Origin: Octopus sinensis
Taxonomy: Eukaryota
Length of the DNA: 64,000 nucleotides
Reading direction: 5' to 3'
NCBI RefSeq assembly: GCF_006345805.1
Contig: NC_043022.1
Coordinates: forward strand, 19,282,001 to 19,346,000
In this document: positions 1,760 to 37,600 of the stretch, piece by piece
How positions within the stretch are numbered: the first letter of the stretch is position 1
Layout: each line of letters begins with the position of its first letter
The notes under the pieces: generated by a model
Database searches by the model: none
What the model saw: only the letters and a program-made list of their open reading frames with translations
What the model was told of the DNA's origin: nothing
Program-made: the position numbers and the translations under genes

Positions 1760-1859
1760 CATTTGTCAAGAAACATCTATGGTAATCAAGTACATTAAAC
1801 AGATAAGGAATGAAAATACAGGAATATATTTTGTAATTTGCCATATTCTGCAGTTTTAC
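1760..1859 (-). CDS. P1 exon 5: VKLQNMANYKIYSCIFIPYLFNVLDYHRCFLTNG
   Basis: Long polypyrimidine tract plus AG, donor GTAAGT, 100 nt, phase 0 to 1. Confidence 0.8.
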
Positions 1860-4800
1860 CTAAAAGTAAGAGAAAAAGAGAAAATTACGACTCAAGGAAT
1901 CACATGGGTTTAGACGGGGGTCACTTTGTTCTGCATCCAGTAATTATGCAGATGTGAAACACCTAAGTTAATCCATCCTTTTACTCTTTTACTCTTTTAC
2001 TCTCTTACTTGTTTCAGTCATTTTGACTGCGGCCATGCTGGAGCACCGCCTTTAATTGAGCAATTCGACCCCGAATTGTGTGGTAGGGAGCTTGCTTTCC
2101 AATGACATGGTTCCAGGTTCAGTACTGATGCATGGCACCCAGGGCAAGTGTCTTTTACTATTGCCTCAGGCACACCAAAGTTCTGTGAGTGGATTTGGTA
2201 GACAGAAACTGAAAGAAGCCCGTCATATATATATATATATATATATATATATATATATAAATACATTCTCTTTTACTCTTTTACTTGTTTCAGTCATTTG
2301 ACTGCGGCCATGCTGGAGCACCGCCTTTAATCAAGCAATTCGACCCCCGGGACTTATTCTTTTGTAAGCCCAGTACTTATTCTATCGGTCTCCTTTGCCA
2401 AACCGCTAAGTAACGGGGACATAAACACACCAGCATCGGTTGTCAAGCAATGCTAGGGGGACAAACACAGACACACAAACACACACACATGCATATATAT
2501 ATATATATATATATATACATATATACGACGAGCTTCTTTCAGTTTCCGTCTACCAAATCCACTCACAAGGCTTTGGTCGGCCCGGGGCTATAGTAGAAGA
2601 CACTTGCCCAAGGTGCCACGCAGTGGGACTGAACCCGGGACAATGTGGTTGGTAAGCAAGCTACTTACCACACAGCCACTCCTGCGCCATTCAGTAATAT
2701 CATATTCGCTTCAACTGAAACGCTCTTTCAGATATTGATAGTCATACAGCGCCATGTTTACAGGAGCTCAGCTGTTTAAGTACAAGGTGCATTGCAGAAG
2801 CTTTGAGACTTTTTCAGGATAGACATTTATTAGTGTTAAAGAGGGAGGCGCAATGGCCTAGTGGTTAGGGCAGCGGACTCGCGGTCGTAGGATCGCGGTT
2901 TTGATTCCCAGACCAGGCGTTGTGAGTGTTTATTGAGCGAAAACACCTAAAGCTCCACGAGGCTCCGGGAGGGGATGGTGGTGGTCCCTGCTGTACTCTT
3001 TCACTACAACTTTCTCTCACTCTTACTTCCTGTTTCTGTTGTACCTGTATTTCAAGGGGCCGGCCTTGTCACTCTCTGTGTCACGCTGAATATCCCCGAG
3101 AACTACGTTAAAGGTACACGTGTCTGTGGAGTGCTCAGCCACTTACACATTAATTTCACGAGCAGGCTGTTCCGTTGATCGGATCAACCGGAACCCTCAT
3201 CGTCGTAACCGACGGAGTGCTTCCACCACAGTGTTAAAGAAGTACAAGACTCTTAAGGACTTCGTGGTATTTCGTCTGCCGCTACATTTTGGCACCTTCA
3301 CTTTAAACGACTTCTCAGATATCCTAGAGTATTGGAGGCACGATGATGATGACGGTGATGATGATGATGACGATGATGATGACGATGATGATGACGATGA
3401 TGATGACGATGATGATGACGATGATGATGACGATGATGATGACGATGATGATGATGACGATGATGATGATGATGATGATGATGATGACGGTGATGATGAT
3501 GATGACGATGATGATGACGGTGATGATGATGATGATGATGATGACGACGACGACGACGACGACGACGACGATGACGACGACGATGATGTGTTTTCGCTCA
3601 ATAAACACTCACAACGCCCGGTCTGGGAATCCTACGACCGCGAGTCCGCTGCCCTAACCACTGGGCCATTGCGCCTCCACATCCTAGAGTATACCAACAA
3701 TGTACTGCTCAAAGCAACATGTAATTTGAACCAGTCCCTTAGGCGCAAAATACCCATAGGATTCGTTTTATCTGTGTATACTATCTATCTGATACTTCAA
3801 CTCTCACCACCCAAATGGCTGAACCACAGGGATTACCCAGTTCTACCAGGTGCATACCTTTTCAAGTATCTGATTCTATCTGAATTCTCAGATAAAATTT
3901 ACATATATACATACATGGTTCCGGGTTCAGTCCCATTGCATGGCACCTTGGGCAAGTGTCTTCTGCTATAGCCTCGGGCCGACCAAAGCCTTGTGAGTGG
4001 ATTCAGTAGACAGAAACTGAAAGAAGCCTGTTGTATATATGCATATATATATATATGTATGTGTGTGTGTTTGTCCCCCTAGCATTGCTTGACAACCGAT
4101 GCTGGTGTGTTTACGTCCCTGTCACTTAGCGGTTCGGCAAAAACAGACCGATAGAATAAGTACGGGATCGATTTGCTCGACTAAAGGCGGTGCTCCAGCA
4201 TGGCCGCAGTCAAAAGTAAAAGAATATATATATATATTAAAAGAAATATATATATGCCAGGAGCGTAACCAGCCTGCTTACCTTTTCCTTCTTTGGTCAC
4301 TAAACTCTGCTTGCGAAGACCTGTTGAGGCAAGTGAAATCAAAATCAATCAAAACCAAAATCAATTCGATGACTGGCATCCGTACTAGTGGGGTGCAGAG
4401 AGCACCATACAAGTGTGATTGTTGACAGAACAGCTAACCAGCTTCCATACCAGTGGCACATAAAAGGGCACCATTCGAGTATCATCGTTACCAGCGTCGC
4501 CTTACTACCACATGTGCTAGTAGGGTGCTAATCTGAGTCCGATCGTTGCCAGAGCAGCCAACTGGCTTCCGTACCCGTGGCACGTAAAAGGGCACCATTC
4601 GAGCGTGACTGTTACCAACGTCGCTTCACTGGCACCTGTGCCGGTGGCATGTGTAAAAAAGATTTGAGAGAGGTCATTGCCAGTACCGCCTGACTGGCGC
4701 CTGTGCCGGTGGCATGTAAATAGCACCCACTACACTCTCGGAGTGGTTGACGTTAGGAAGGGCATCCAGCCGTAGAAACTCTGTCAGATCAAGATTGGAG

Positions 4801-34600: not shown

Positions 34601-37600
34601 CTAATCCTGCATGAAGATATGTTTGTGTGTGTGTGTGTGTGTGTGTGCATATGTGTGTGTATATATGTAATGCTTAGCGGTATTTCGTCTGTCGTTACGT
34701 TCAGAGTTCAAATTCCGCCGAGGTCGACTTTGCCTTTCATCCTTTCGGGGTCGATAAATAAGTACCAGTTTCGCACTGGAGTCGGTGCAAACGACTTAAT
34801 CCGTGTGTCTATCCTTGTTTGTCCACTCAATGTCTAGCCCCTTGTAGGCAGTAATGAAATATATACGTATTTGTATATAAGCGTGTGTGTGTGTTTGTAT
34901 GTGTGTGTTTGTATCTGTGATTGTCGCTCGCCTCACCAGCACTTGACAACCTGTGTAGATGTTTTTACTTCCCCGGAACTTAGTGGTTCACCAAAAGAGA
35001 TTGATAGAATAAGTACCAGGATTTAAAACAAATATTACTTGTTAAATTTGTTCAACTAACCTCCTTCAAGGTGGTGCCCCACCATGGTCGCTGTGTAATG
35101 ACAGAAACATGTAGAAGAGAAAAGATGACAGTAGAAGCCGTTGAAACATTTAAAATGTAAACTTTGAATGAAGCAGGTAAACTTCTTTCAAAATGGAAAC
35201 AAGAGAAATAAACGTTTCGCTCACCTTTTTCTCCAACCCAAATTCCCCTTCAGTGAAAAAAGCTATCCAATTGAGTTCATTCCAATGCAATGAAAGAAAG
35301 AACGATGCATTTGAAGTTCTAGAATATTTGCTAAACGTAAAATTGGCGTAATAATGAGGTGCAGCACGATAAGAACTTTTAAAATCGTCATTTATGTCGC
35401 TACGTGTAACTTCAAAAGTCCAGCGATCCACTAGAAATAAAAAAGAGAAAATTGGACATTAGTGACAGCAAAATTTCAAAATCAATAAACTTGAAAAGAT
35501 AATTACTTTTATAAAGAGGAGGATTAAAACGGAAATTATAAGAACATGGTGGGAAAATATTTGTTTTCCCTGCTCTTCCACCTTAGTTTATGACAGTTTT
35601 TACATTTAGATGAGACTGCCCCATGGTTTTAGGCAAGTGTCTTGTACAACAGCCTTGGGCTAACCAGAGCCTTGTGAGGGCATGTAGTAGATGGAAACTT
35701 AAAGAGCCCCATGGTATATATCTTTATCTATAGCTATATATATAAATATAAAAGTATGCAAAGCAAAGCCGACCTCGGCGGAATTTGAACTCAGAATGTA
35801 ACGGCAGACGAAACACGCGCGGAGTGGTAACGTTTCTGCAAGTCACCTCATATATATATATATATATATATATATATATTTTTATATATATATATATATA
35901 TATAATATATATATATATATATATATATATATATATATATATATATATACATACTTTATTAAAGCAGCAGAAAATTCAACATGAGTTTCTCGTTGCCGGT
36001 CACCAGACAGTTTTTGCTAGAATATATATATATATATATAATGTGTTTTTTTTTAATGGGCTAAGGGTTTGAGTGGAGCTGATGAACTTGAGGGCTGCAC
36101 TAGGTTCTCCTCTGACTTGGCAGGGTTTCTTCAGCTGGATAACGCCAATCACCCCAGGTGCATAATGAGTGCTTTTACGCACCTTTGTCATGGGTGCCAT
36201 TGATATGACACCAGGAATGACCACAACTACGATTCATGGGTCGGTGCCATTCACATGGCACCAACAACAACCCTGACTACGATTCATGAGTGCCATTTGC
36301 ATTTAATCTTTTGAAATTTCCTCCCATTCTTAAAAAATGCTGTTCACAATTTTGTACAGAATTTTGTTTAAATTTCTCTCGTTAATTGAGAAAATTTCAC
36401 TTGATTAAGACTTTTTACATATGGCATTAGTACACCACTTCTTAATTTATTTCATAGAACTTCGTGTCATTGGTATCTTTGAGTTATCTCCCTTAGCTCA
36501 TTTAAAAAAAAACACATTAATTAAACAGAATATACTGAGTCAAAATTATTATAACTCTTTGACTATATGTAAAAATCTTTGTCACTTGGAGTAACTAAAT
36601 AACCTTAACGAGGTCTAACACACTGAAACATATCCATTGTTGTCCCCTTGCCTGCAAATTAAGACCAGGCTTTACTTTTAATAATTATTTAATTAATTAT
36701 TTCGAGGAATTAATCCCAATGTCTTAAAATTATTTCTCCTTTTCCTTCAGACGCCAACAATTGCCACTAGCTTTTTCTTTTCTTCATCTAAACATTCCAG
36801 TAAATTTTTTGCATACACGAATCCTTATATTATTTATGCAAAACCTTAGACTCAGGGTAACACTACCGATTTAGCCATTTTAGAAAATATTTATTTTTAT
36901 ATCCATTTTCATATATCAAGATTAGTTGGAAAATTTATTGAAAATTTCAAATAATGATTTGTGATTGACGCCAGCTTGTCTTTCTCGTTACTGACTACAC
37001 AACTGTGAATTGAACCTGTAAGCATAAGATAATGTGTCTTTTCTGAGGATTGAATGGCAGCAATAAGATTTGAACTCCTAATATTGATCTTTGTAGTTGA
37101 GCCCATTAACCTTATAATTCTTATGCTTCAATGTGTGTGTGTGTGTGTGTGTGTGTGTGTGAAACAAAAGCATTTCTTGATGAGTTTAAAAGAGAAAAAA
37201 CACAACAAAAATGTTAAACGTAAAAAACCGTCCTCAGGAAAACAGCGTACTTTTCTCCAATCCTGTCTTTGTCTGATTATAAGAATTCCATTTGTAGTAA
37301 CCATAATACATTTCTTGAAGATTGCGATTTTGAACAAGTGCCTAAGATAAAGTAAATCATCAAAATTAACAGCAGCAGGTTATTTCAAATAAATTAATAA
37401 TGATGACAGTGATGATGTTGATGATGATGACCATGATGATGATGATGATGAGGAGGAGGAGGAGGAGGAGGATGGTTATGTTGATGGTAAAACATTTATA
37501 GTGTATAATTTGTATTTCGTTCCTCACACACACACATACGCGCACAAACACACACACACACACACAATTACCCAGGGCATATATACTGGACATTTGTACA

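Follow-up and report, generated by a model that had tools for sequence, protein, structure and literature searches.

Ectodomain exons that outpace their introns on some lineages of an octopod-restricted gene family

The locus studied here raises the question of why the exons of neighboring gene copies should differ more than the introns between them. We analyzed a 64,000-nucleotide stretch of the Octopus sinensis genome (the window: contig NC_043022.1, positions 19,282,001 to 19,346,000, forward strand), in which self-comparison revealed tandem copies of one gene: P1 and P2, collinear on the minus strand, and P3, an inverted partial copy on the plus strand. An earlier note, made from the sequence alone, had proposed that P1 and P2 exons diverge more than their flanking introns because of diversifying selection on loops, as in toxin, immune-receptor or gamete-recognition families. 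We compared these copies with S1, an O. sinensis paralog (L001), with the O. vulgaris ortholog of S1 (L003), and with B1 and B2, the O. bimaculoides orthologs of P1 (L002) and P2 (L004). Amino acid change in ectodomain exons 2 to 7 runs at or above the synonymous rate and at about 2 to 4 times the divergence of adjacent noncoding DNA. It is fast only on some branches (P2 and B2, S1, and the P2/P3 pair), and P1 and B1 are under purifying selection. This pattern probably reflects episodic positive (diversifying) selection acting on the ectodomain in an octopod receptor-like family.

Exon limits were set from splice sites and reading frame and then confirmed by database searches. All splice sites of P1 exons 1 to 5 and P2 exons 1 to 7 are canonical AG/GT, the joined frames are open, and exons 3, 4, and 5 measure 91, 206, and 100 nucleotides (nt) in both copies. 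No marks of a decayed pseudogene (stops, frameshifts, lost splice sites) were found in P1 exons 1 to 5 or P2 exons 1 to 7, and such marks are present in P3. A 92-nt exon 3 was rejected, as it breaks the frame; the donor GTAAGC preceded by AAAA gives 91 nt. Based on database searches, the P1 model corresponds to the N-terminal 215 residues of O. sinensis LOC118768046 (P0005), and the P2 model to O. sinensis LOC115224696 (P0003) except for one additional annotated exon. P1 extends from about 11.6 kb to beyond the window start, with its remainder outside the window; P2 spans about 44.8 to about 22 kb. P2 exons 8 and 9 are tblastn matches without stop codons, and their limits are approximate. The exons are as follows.

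11333..11387, minus strand: P1 exon 1, 55 nt; start codon and signal peptide MLLLSYWSILVIIFPYLL; identical to the LOC118768046 N terminus
9178..9371, minus strand: P1 exon 2, 194 nt; the best conserved 5' exon, 82 to 87% identical to P2 exon 2
6721..6811, minus strand: P1 exon 3, 91 nt; Cys-x4-Cys loop CGKTFC encoded in the second half; identity to P2 exon 3, 61.5%
5347..5552, minus strand: P1 exon 4, 206 nt; 66.0% nucleotide and 41% amino acid identity to P2 exon 4
1760..1859, minus strand: P1 exon 5, 100 nt; variable patch at 1776-1817, encoding IFIPYLFNVLDYHR, between two Cys
44505..44559, minus strand: P2 exon 1, 55 nt; matches LOC115224696
44154..44389, minus strand: P2 exon 2, 236 nt; has a second repeat unit
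37251..37341, minus strand: P2 exon 3, 91 nt; Cys pair lost (YYKWNSY)
35225..35430, minus strand: P2 exon 4, 206 nt
33676..33775, minus strand: P2 exon 5, 100 nt; variable patch at 33692-33733
30458..30690, minus strand: P2 exon 6, 233 nt
29365..29458, minus strand: P2 exon 7, 94 nt
27137..27373 (approximate), minus strand: P2 exon 8; start of the conserved membrane-proximal region, WLLKVISPE...; tblastn with the B2 C terminus
25580..25681 (approximate), minus strand: P2 exon 9; end of the conserved membrane-proximal region; tblastn with the B2 C terminus
22007..22253, minus strand: P2 last exon; end of the transmembrane segment and cytoplasmic tail; absent from the RefSeq model; tblastn with the B2 tail, 74% identity

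Between P1 and P2, 260 of 397 ungapped positions in exons 3 to 5 are identical (65.5%). Intron identity was 78.8% inside the same contiguous BLAST alignments (p = 4.9e-7 against exons 3 to 5), 83.9% over all collinear blocks (p = 1.5e-15), and 76.1% for globally aligned 80-nt exon-proximal flanks (p = 3.4e-4); these values depend on the alignment method, and the block-based ones count alignable intron only. The earlier claim that exons are more diverged than flanking introns thus holds for exons 3 to 5 under all three intron alignments. The intron blocks cited in its support are indeed more alike than the exons, but "near-identical" overstated an identity of about 85 to 90%. Exon 2, about 82 to 87% identical, is not more diverged than intron.

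The divergence is patchy. Of the exon 5 codons, the first 14 encode 2 residue differences and the next 14 (IFIPYLFNVLDYHR in P1) are unrelated, with the second Cys and the 100-nt length kept. Exon 4 peptides are identical at 41% of 69 codons, in line with the roughly 28 shared residues counted earlier, and exon 3 shows similar behavior at a length of 91 nt in both copies. By permutation, mismatches cluster in exon 5 (p < 2e-4), with p = 0.023 for exon 4 and p = 0.11 for exon 3. Pairwise alignment of exon 3 suggests two in-frame 6-nt indels that recover similarity, and the multiple alignment stayed ungapped. A compensated frameshift was rejected as the origin of the patches in exons 3 and 5; for exon 5, no out-of-frame similarity was seen. 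Exon 5 measures 85, 100, or 103 nt among the copies, with 103 nt in B2.

We estimated nonsynonymous (dN) and synonymous (dS) divergence and their ratio, omega, with our own implementation of the Nei-Gojobori method (NG86) and a bootstrap. For P1-P2, dN is 0.360 and dS 0.368, an omega of 0.98 (95% bootstrap interval, 0.66 to 1.49), and for exons 3 to 5 the values are 0.467, 0.451, and 1.04. The earlier note had offered to abandon selection if omega did not exceed 1 and exons proved no more diverged than introns; omega is indeed 0.98, and exon divergence is higher than intron divergence. Stop-free frames are improbable under random substitution (185 to 244 substitutions; P = 5e-5 for P2-B2 and 1.4e-3 for P1-P2). 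Frames that stay open so far beyond chance call for selection of some kind, so an omega near 1 points to a mixture of constraint and excess change and not to simple decay.

Comparison with O. bimaculoides places the change on one side of the pair. P1-B1 is constrained, with dN 0.093, dS 0.247, and omega 0.38 (0.23 to 0.64; 0.27 in exons 3 to 5). Its exons are more conserved than the flanks (88.8% versus 83.9%, p = 0.011), exon 5 reaches 95% identity, and the loop persists (IFIPYLFNVLDYHR in P1, IFIPYLFNVLYYHR in B1). For P2-B2, dN is 0.299, dS 0.259, and omega 1.16 (0.85 to 1.62). Since dS is equal in the two pairs, the difference sits in dN, which is three times higher in P2-B2. B2 retains the exon 3 Cys pair (CGMTFC), and its exon 5 loop, IFIFYPNNPEFPHHK, is intermediate between those of P1 and P2, with exon 5 identity to B2 of 81% for P1 and 71% for P2. 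Thus, the contrast between P1 and P2 stems mostly from the P2 lineage, and the seemingly unrelated exon 3 and exon 5 patches arose there after the split from O. bimaculoides. Acceleration is not general to P1 and P2, given the signature of purifying selection that the P1 coding sequence carries against B1.

A less saturated pair, S1 and its O. vulgaris ortholog, differs at 42 of 958 exon positions (4.4%) and 131 of 9,589 intron positions (1.4%, p = 2e-9); these introns align end to end, and part of the 131 differences is microsatellite slippage. Exon changes are 37 nonsynonymous and 5 synonymous, giving dN 0.050, dS 0.027, and omega 1.8, and dN exceeds the intron value of 0.014 (p = 1.4e-9).

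The P2/P3 pair shows the same excess. P2 and P3 stand head to head, separated by a spacer of about 6.8 kb, within the following inverted duplication.

37100..46873, no strand assigned: left arm, with the 5' part of P2 and its upstream region; self-BLAST, 89 to 95% identity including gaps
53636..60868, no strand assigned: right arm (P3); self-BLAST
57419..57473, plus strand: P3 exon 1, in the inverted partial duplicate of P2
57590..57864 (end approximate), plus strand: P3 exon 2; a 39-nt in-frame insertion forms a third repeat unit; GTAAGT donor kept
60614..60704, plus strand: P3 exon-3-like piece; acceptor AG changed to TG and donor GT to CT

P3 is a 5' fragment: the duplication stops about 160 nt past exon 3, and the window holds no exon 4 downstream of the exon-3-like piece. 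The frame of P3 exon 2 is open over the stretch aligned with P2. P2 and P3 differ at 13.6% of exon-derived positions versus 4.2% substitutions in noncoding DNA (p = 3e-12), with 2 of 55 positions changed in exon 1, 33 of 236 in exon 2 plus the 39-nt insertion, and 17 of 91 in exon 3. Over 382 exon-derived nt, the P3 branch itself carries about 30 changes, versus about 2% in the flanks, and 26 of these exon changes are nonsynonymous in the P2 frame; polarizing these differences used distant outgroups and is noisy. Exons 1 and 2 of P3 are intact, as are the donors that follow them, and P3 may have been functional earlier. B1 and B2, too, face each other head to head in O. bimaculoides, with about 18 kb between them, so gene order or orientation differs between the species.

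Taken as a mechanism, episodic diversifying selection would have acted after duplication on a putative ligand- or partner-binding ectodomain, and purifying selection would keep the frame, splice sites, and scaffold residues. The exon 3 and exon 5 patches would have accumulated through many point substitutions and small in-frame indels, as the intermediate states in B2 suggest. The diversifying selection claimed by the earlier note is supported by the less saturated S1-ortholog and P2-P3 pairs, but not by P1-P2, with its omega of 0.98, or by the constrained P1-B1 pair.

Several results weigh against positive selection, and they bear on an account in which P2 (and S1) drifted near neutrality after duplication, under relaxed constraint alone, with omega near 1 and with introns under-sampled by BLAST-alignable blocks. 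We consider this account unlikely. No pairwise omega is significantly above 1 (0.98, 1.16, and 1.8 are all consistent with 1, and the intervals include it), and a Fisher test of nonsynonymous versus synonymous change between S1 and its ortholog gave p = 0.24. Codon positions in P1-P2 exons 3 to 5 are about equally diverged (identities of 0.59, 0.67, and 0.70), and setting all five exons against globally aligned 80-nt flanks leaves a marginal difference (71.3% versus 76.1%, p = 0.056), as exon 2 matches intron in conservation. In P1-P2, dS is about twice the Jukes-Cantor distance of aligned intron (0.182), and synonymous sites show this roughly twofold excess in every pair; thus, part of the exon excess is not due to protein selection, or introns are underestimated because only alignable blocks are counted. 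P2 has lost the exon 3 Cys pair, which the other five copies compared all keep, and its annotated RefSeq protein lacks a membrane anchor (the membrane exon is present in the DNA); its tail exon also shows a possible frame change. Changed residues are equally frequent in predicted strands and non-strand regions of a model with a mean confidence near 80 (odds ratio 0.94 to 1.19, p = 0.70 to 1.0), with no enrichment outside strands, so the earlier idea that selection targets loops is not supported. The exon excess in the truncated P3 is poorly explained by selection alone, unless P3 was once functional. Against drift alone, frames and splice sites are intact despite 185 to 244 substitutions, an outcome with the chance probabilities of 1.4e-3 to 5e-5 given above. 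In the unsaturated pairs, moreover, where intron alignments are complete from end to end, exon divergence is still roughly threefold higher (4.4% versus 1.4%; 13.6% versus 4.2%), and the S1-ortholog ratio of 37:5 compares with an expected ratio of about 4:1.

The contrast could also be made on the intron side, if conversion or unequal exchange keeps noncoding DNA alike and converted exons are selected out or diverged exons block conversion tracts. Gene conversion does act in this cluster, making introns an imperfect clock: over introns 1 to 4, distances within species (0.139 for B1-B2 and 0.182 for P1-P2) are below the 0.216 of both cross-species paralog pairs; B1-B2 equals the P1-B1 ortholog distance of 0.137, and B1-B2 introns 1 and 4 are 92.5 to 92.8% identical. 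Exons 8 and 9 are conserved and homogenized between P1 and P2, which share 93 of 106 residues there versus 84 and 87 with their own orthologs and differ at one position over the last 52 residues of the membrane-proximal region, a pattern that indicates concerted evolution of the genes' 3' half. As the source of the exon excess, homogenization is very unlikely. P1-P2 exon-proximal flanks (0.761 identical) show no excess likeness over cross-species paralogs (0.77 to 0.80), and collinear species-specific copies of short interspersed elements (SINEs) may inflate the block-based intron figures and give part of the within-species likeness. Orthologs of two species, which homogenization cannot reach, show the exon excess as well, and homogenization gives no account of a P2-B2 dN three times that of P1-B1. 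A process directed at exons themselves, by segment replacement or local hypermutation that raises the rate of change regardless of selection, would explain the twofold excess of dS over intron in all pairs, the mismatches in short near-random patches at fixed exon length (clearest in exon 5), and the 30 or so changes on the P3 branch. The pattern also fits the description of ASSET, the name given to short "switched" exon segments in snake toxins (PMC2711939). Nevertheless, this process is very improbable as the cause. The 95% identity of P1-B1 exon 5 and the lower divergence of P1-B1 exons than flanks argue against constitutive exon hypermutation, B2 supplies stepwise intermediates for both patches, polarization of P2 and P3 is noisy, and P3 may have been functional. 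A broader version, in which exon-targeted mutation or segment replacement acts on a cell-surface receptor with a possible part in non-self or mate recognition, would account for exon change several times faster than that of adjacent noncoding DNA, at synonymous sites and in the probably dead P3 as well, and we regard it as a long shot.

Episodic diversifying selection thus remains our preferred reading, and the architecture of the proteins bears on what such selection could act upon. Family proteins have a signal peptide, a long ectodomain, a stalk whose 14-residue repeats are encoded by three 42-nt exons, a transmembrane segment, and a short tail. The ectodomain, about 430 to 480 residues, is all-beta, with 9 to 17 N-glycosylation sequons and a few conserved Cys pairs. 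Complete members have 518 to 667 residues and a cytoplasmic tail (P0006-P0009, P0020, P0024, P0033). All members have a hydrophobic N terminus, transmembrane segments were read directly in P0006-P0009 and P0033, and family proteins give weak Pfam matches to transmembrane-region families. From sequence, orthologs, and models, these are predicted single-pass type I membrane glycoproteins. The toxin family type that the earlier note allowed is thus unlikely, as full-length members are type I membrane proteins with a cytoplasmic tail; an immune or recognition receptor role is a guess.

AlphaFold modeled the N-terminal 194 residues as all-beta, with a predicted local distance difference test score (pLDDT) of 80.4 and a predicted template modeling score (pTM) of 0.74; the full-length model was poor (pLDDT 58.7). 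In the N-terminal model, the exon 5 patch forms a beta-hairpin whose strands each bear one Cys (175 and 190), and the exon 3 CGKTFC segment is a loop (fragment residues 78-86). Foldseek searches with the full-length and N-terminal models gave no match with E below 0.005. The best local likeness was to the PLAT/LH2 sandwich (probability 0.97 to 1.0 over 110 to 130 columns, E 0.04 to 0.1, template modeling [TM] score 0.29 to 0.33, root mean square deviation 5 to 7 A), and family proteins have no Pfam PLAT match. A sequence-profile search of the PDB found no match at E up to 10. Pfam returned nothing above threshold for the exon 3 to 5 peptides or for full-length family proteins.

The gene family is octopod-restricted and uncharacterized, as far as the databases searched can tell. 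It comprises only 27 representatives among 1.84 billion proteins. All 10 representatives whose source names we looked up are from octopods (Octopus sinensis, O. vulgaris, O. bimaculoides, and Argonauta hians) and carry the names "uncharacterized" or "hypothetical." No paper in the literature searched, by LOC and UniProt identifiers and for rapidly evolving octopus families, mentions these genes. The distant members P0009 and P0020 (Argonauta hians) have cytoplasmic tails with repeated DIEQLYTQPIK-like motifs (Y-x-x-P), which could be phosphotyrosine docking sites.

Some further observations concern the gene models. The 3' end of exon 2 varies by whole 13-residue units: P1, B1, and S1 have a single unit, P2 and B2 have two, and P3 has three (variable region at 9178-9240 in P1, 44154-44250 in P2, and 57730-57864 in P3). 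The extra exon in the RefSeq P2 model lies at about 42820-42903 (minus strand), in a block that is also conserved and open in P1 intron 2 (7314-7642); stop codons are apparent by eye in the homologous S1 sequence, which was not translated. This may be an alternative exon or an annotation artifact. The P2 tail exon gives two alignments with the tail of B2, each in its own frame, and these overlap near 22048, which suggests a frameshift or a sequencing error there in the P2 cytoplasmic tail. The annotated C terminus of S1, KGKYEKVRTAK, is read-through into an intron (L001, about 32083-32114) that opens with a short tandem duplication of the end of exon 7; the O. vulgaris ortholog splices to the conserved exons 8 and 9.

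The window itself is eukaryotic and cephalopod-like in its composition, SINE copies derived from transfer RNA (tRNA), microsatellites, and spliced exons, and a reading of its open frames as bacterial-style genes was dropped on the strength of the SINEs, microsatellites, and spliced exons. The tRNA-derived SINE copies occur throughout (e.g., 2840-2960, 3600-3680, and 5830-5940), an inverted pair of SINEs flanks a long (GAT)n/(GAC)n array at 3340-3590, and the window contains at least eight copies of a repeat some 400 nt long. None of the tRNA-derived SINE heads was called as tRNA by ARAGORN. An element resembling U6 small nuclear RNA (Rfam RF00026, 78.9 bits) lies at 9369-9468 on the plus strand, antisense in P1 intron 1, and abuts the exon 2 acceptor; the likeness to U6 covers its 3' 70 nt and does not extend to its 5' 30 nt. 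At this element, about 350 nt are gapped in the P1-B1 alignment, so the insertion seems specific to O. sinensis.

Exons that change faster than introns, with omega near 1 or higher, are the classic pattern of snake PLA2, three-finger toxins, and conotoxins, and local hypermutation has been proposed for conotoxins. The octopus genes share with venom families their tandem paralogs, exons more diverged than introns, point estimates of omega of about 1 or more outside P1-B1 (with intervals that include 1), and a largely kept signal peptide and Cys framework. This exon excess is present in P1-P2 exons 3 to 5, P2-P3, and the S1-ortholog pair and absent from P1-B1. Unlike the small secreted venom proteins, the octopus proteins have about 450 to 670 residues and are membrane-anchored with a tail in complete models; their acceleration is limited to some lineages, and P2 has lost a Cys pair. 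PMC2711939 and PMC2474615 give review context for such accelerated venom-gland families.

The likeness to ASSET is that, within exons 3 and 5, short stretches bounded by conserved flanks and Cys have given way to seemingly unrelated sequence while the introns are similar. The octopus family differs in its B2 intermediates and in the variable length of exon 5. Since these two features make substitutions plus small in-frame indels sufficient, no switch mechanism is needed, and we rejected one based on the B2 intermediate and the exon 3 similarity recovered by the alignment with 6-nt plus 6-nt in-frame indels.

At MHC class I loci, introns are homogenized relative to exons, and the octopus cluster resembles them in noncoding DNA kept alike by recombination or conversion while selected exons stay diverse. 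MHC variants, however, are alleles of one locus under balancing selection, whereas the octopus copies are paralogs and orthologs, and homogenization is clearly seen only in the O. bimaculoides introns and in exons 8 and 9 of P1 and P2.

The pattern is already known from toxins and immune genes, and the advance here would be a new family and system, not a new principle. The cluster is a natural test of selection versus mutation bias, as it combines constrained and accelerated lineages, a recent partial duplicate, and sibling species with about 1% intron divergence. If real, an exon-targeted process in a cephalopod would be of the kind long suspected, and never explained, for conotoxins and snake toxins. 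Cephalopods have no adaptive immune system, and few cephalopod recognition receptors are known to us. A lineage-restricted, clustered, receptor-like family is therefore a candidate for octopod immune, self/non-self, or gamete recognition.

Among vertebrate receptors, we compared the family with immune receptors of the KIR and LILR type. No immunoreceptor tyrosine-based inhibitory or activation motifs (ITIM/ITAM) were seen by eye in the family tails, where no systematic search was made. The octopus family differs in having no sequence similarity or significant structural similarity to Ig domains (no Pfam Ig match in family proteins; Foldseek against KIR and LILR, E 0.005 to 0.2, probability at most 0.51, TM score at most 0.23) and in being confined to octopods. 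The likenesses are a single-pass protein with tandem beta-sandwich ectodomains, clustered paralogs alongside pseudogenes and partially duplicated copies, lineage-specific expansion, and rapid change in the N-terminal region next to a conserved membrane-proximal one. Although not an Ig-family member, the octopus family is most like the fast-evolving, clustered immune receptors, in both architecture and genomic behavior.

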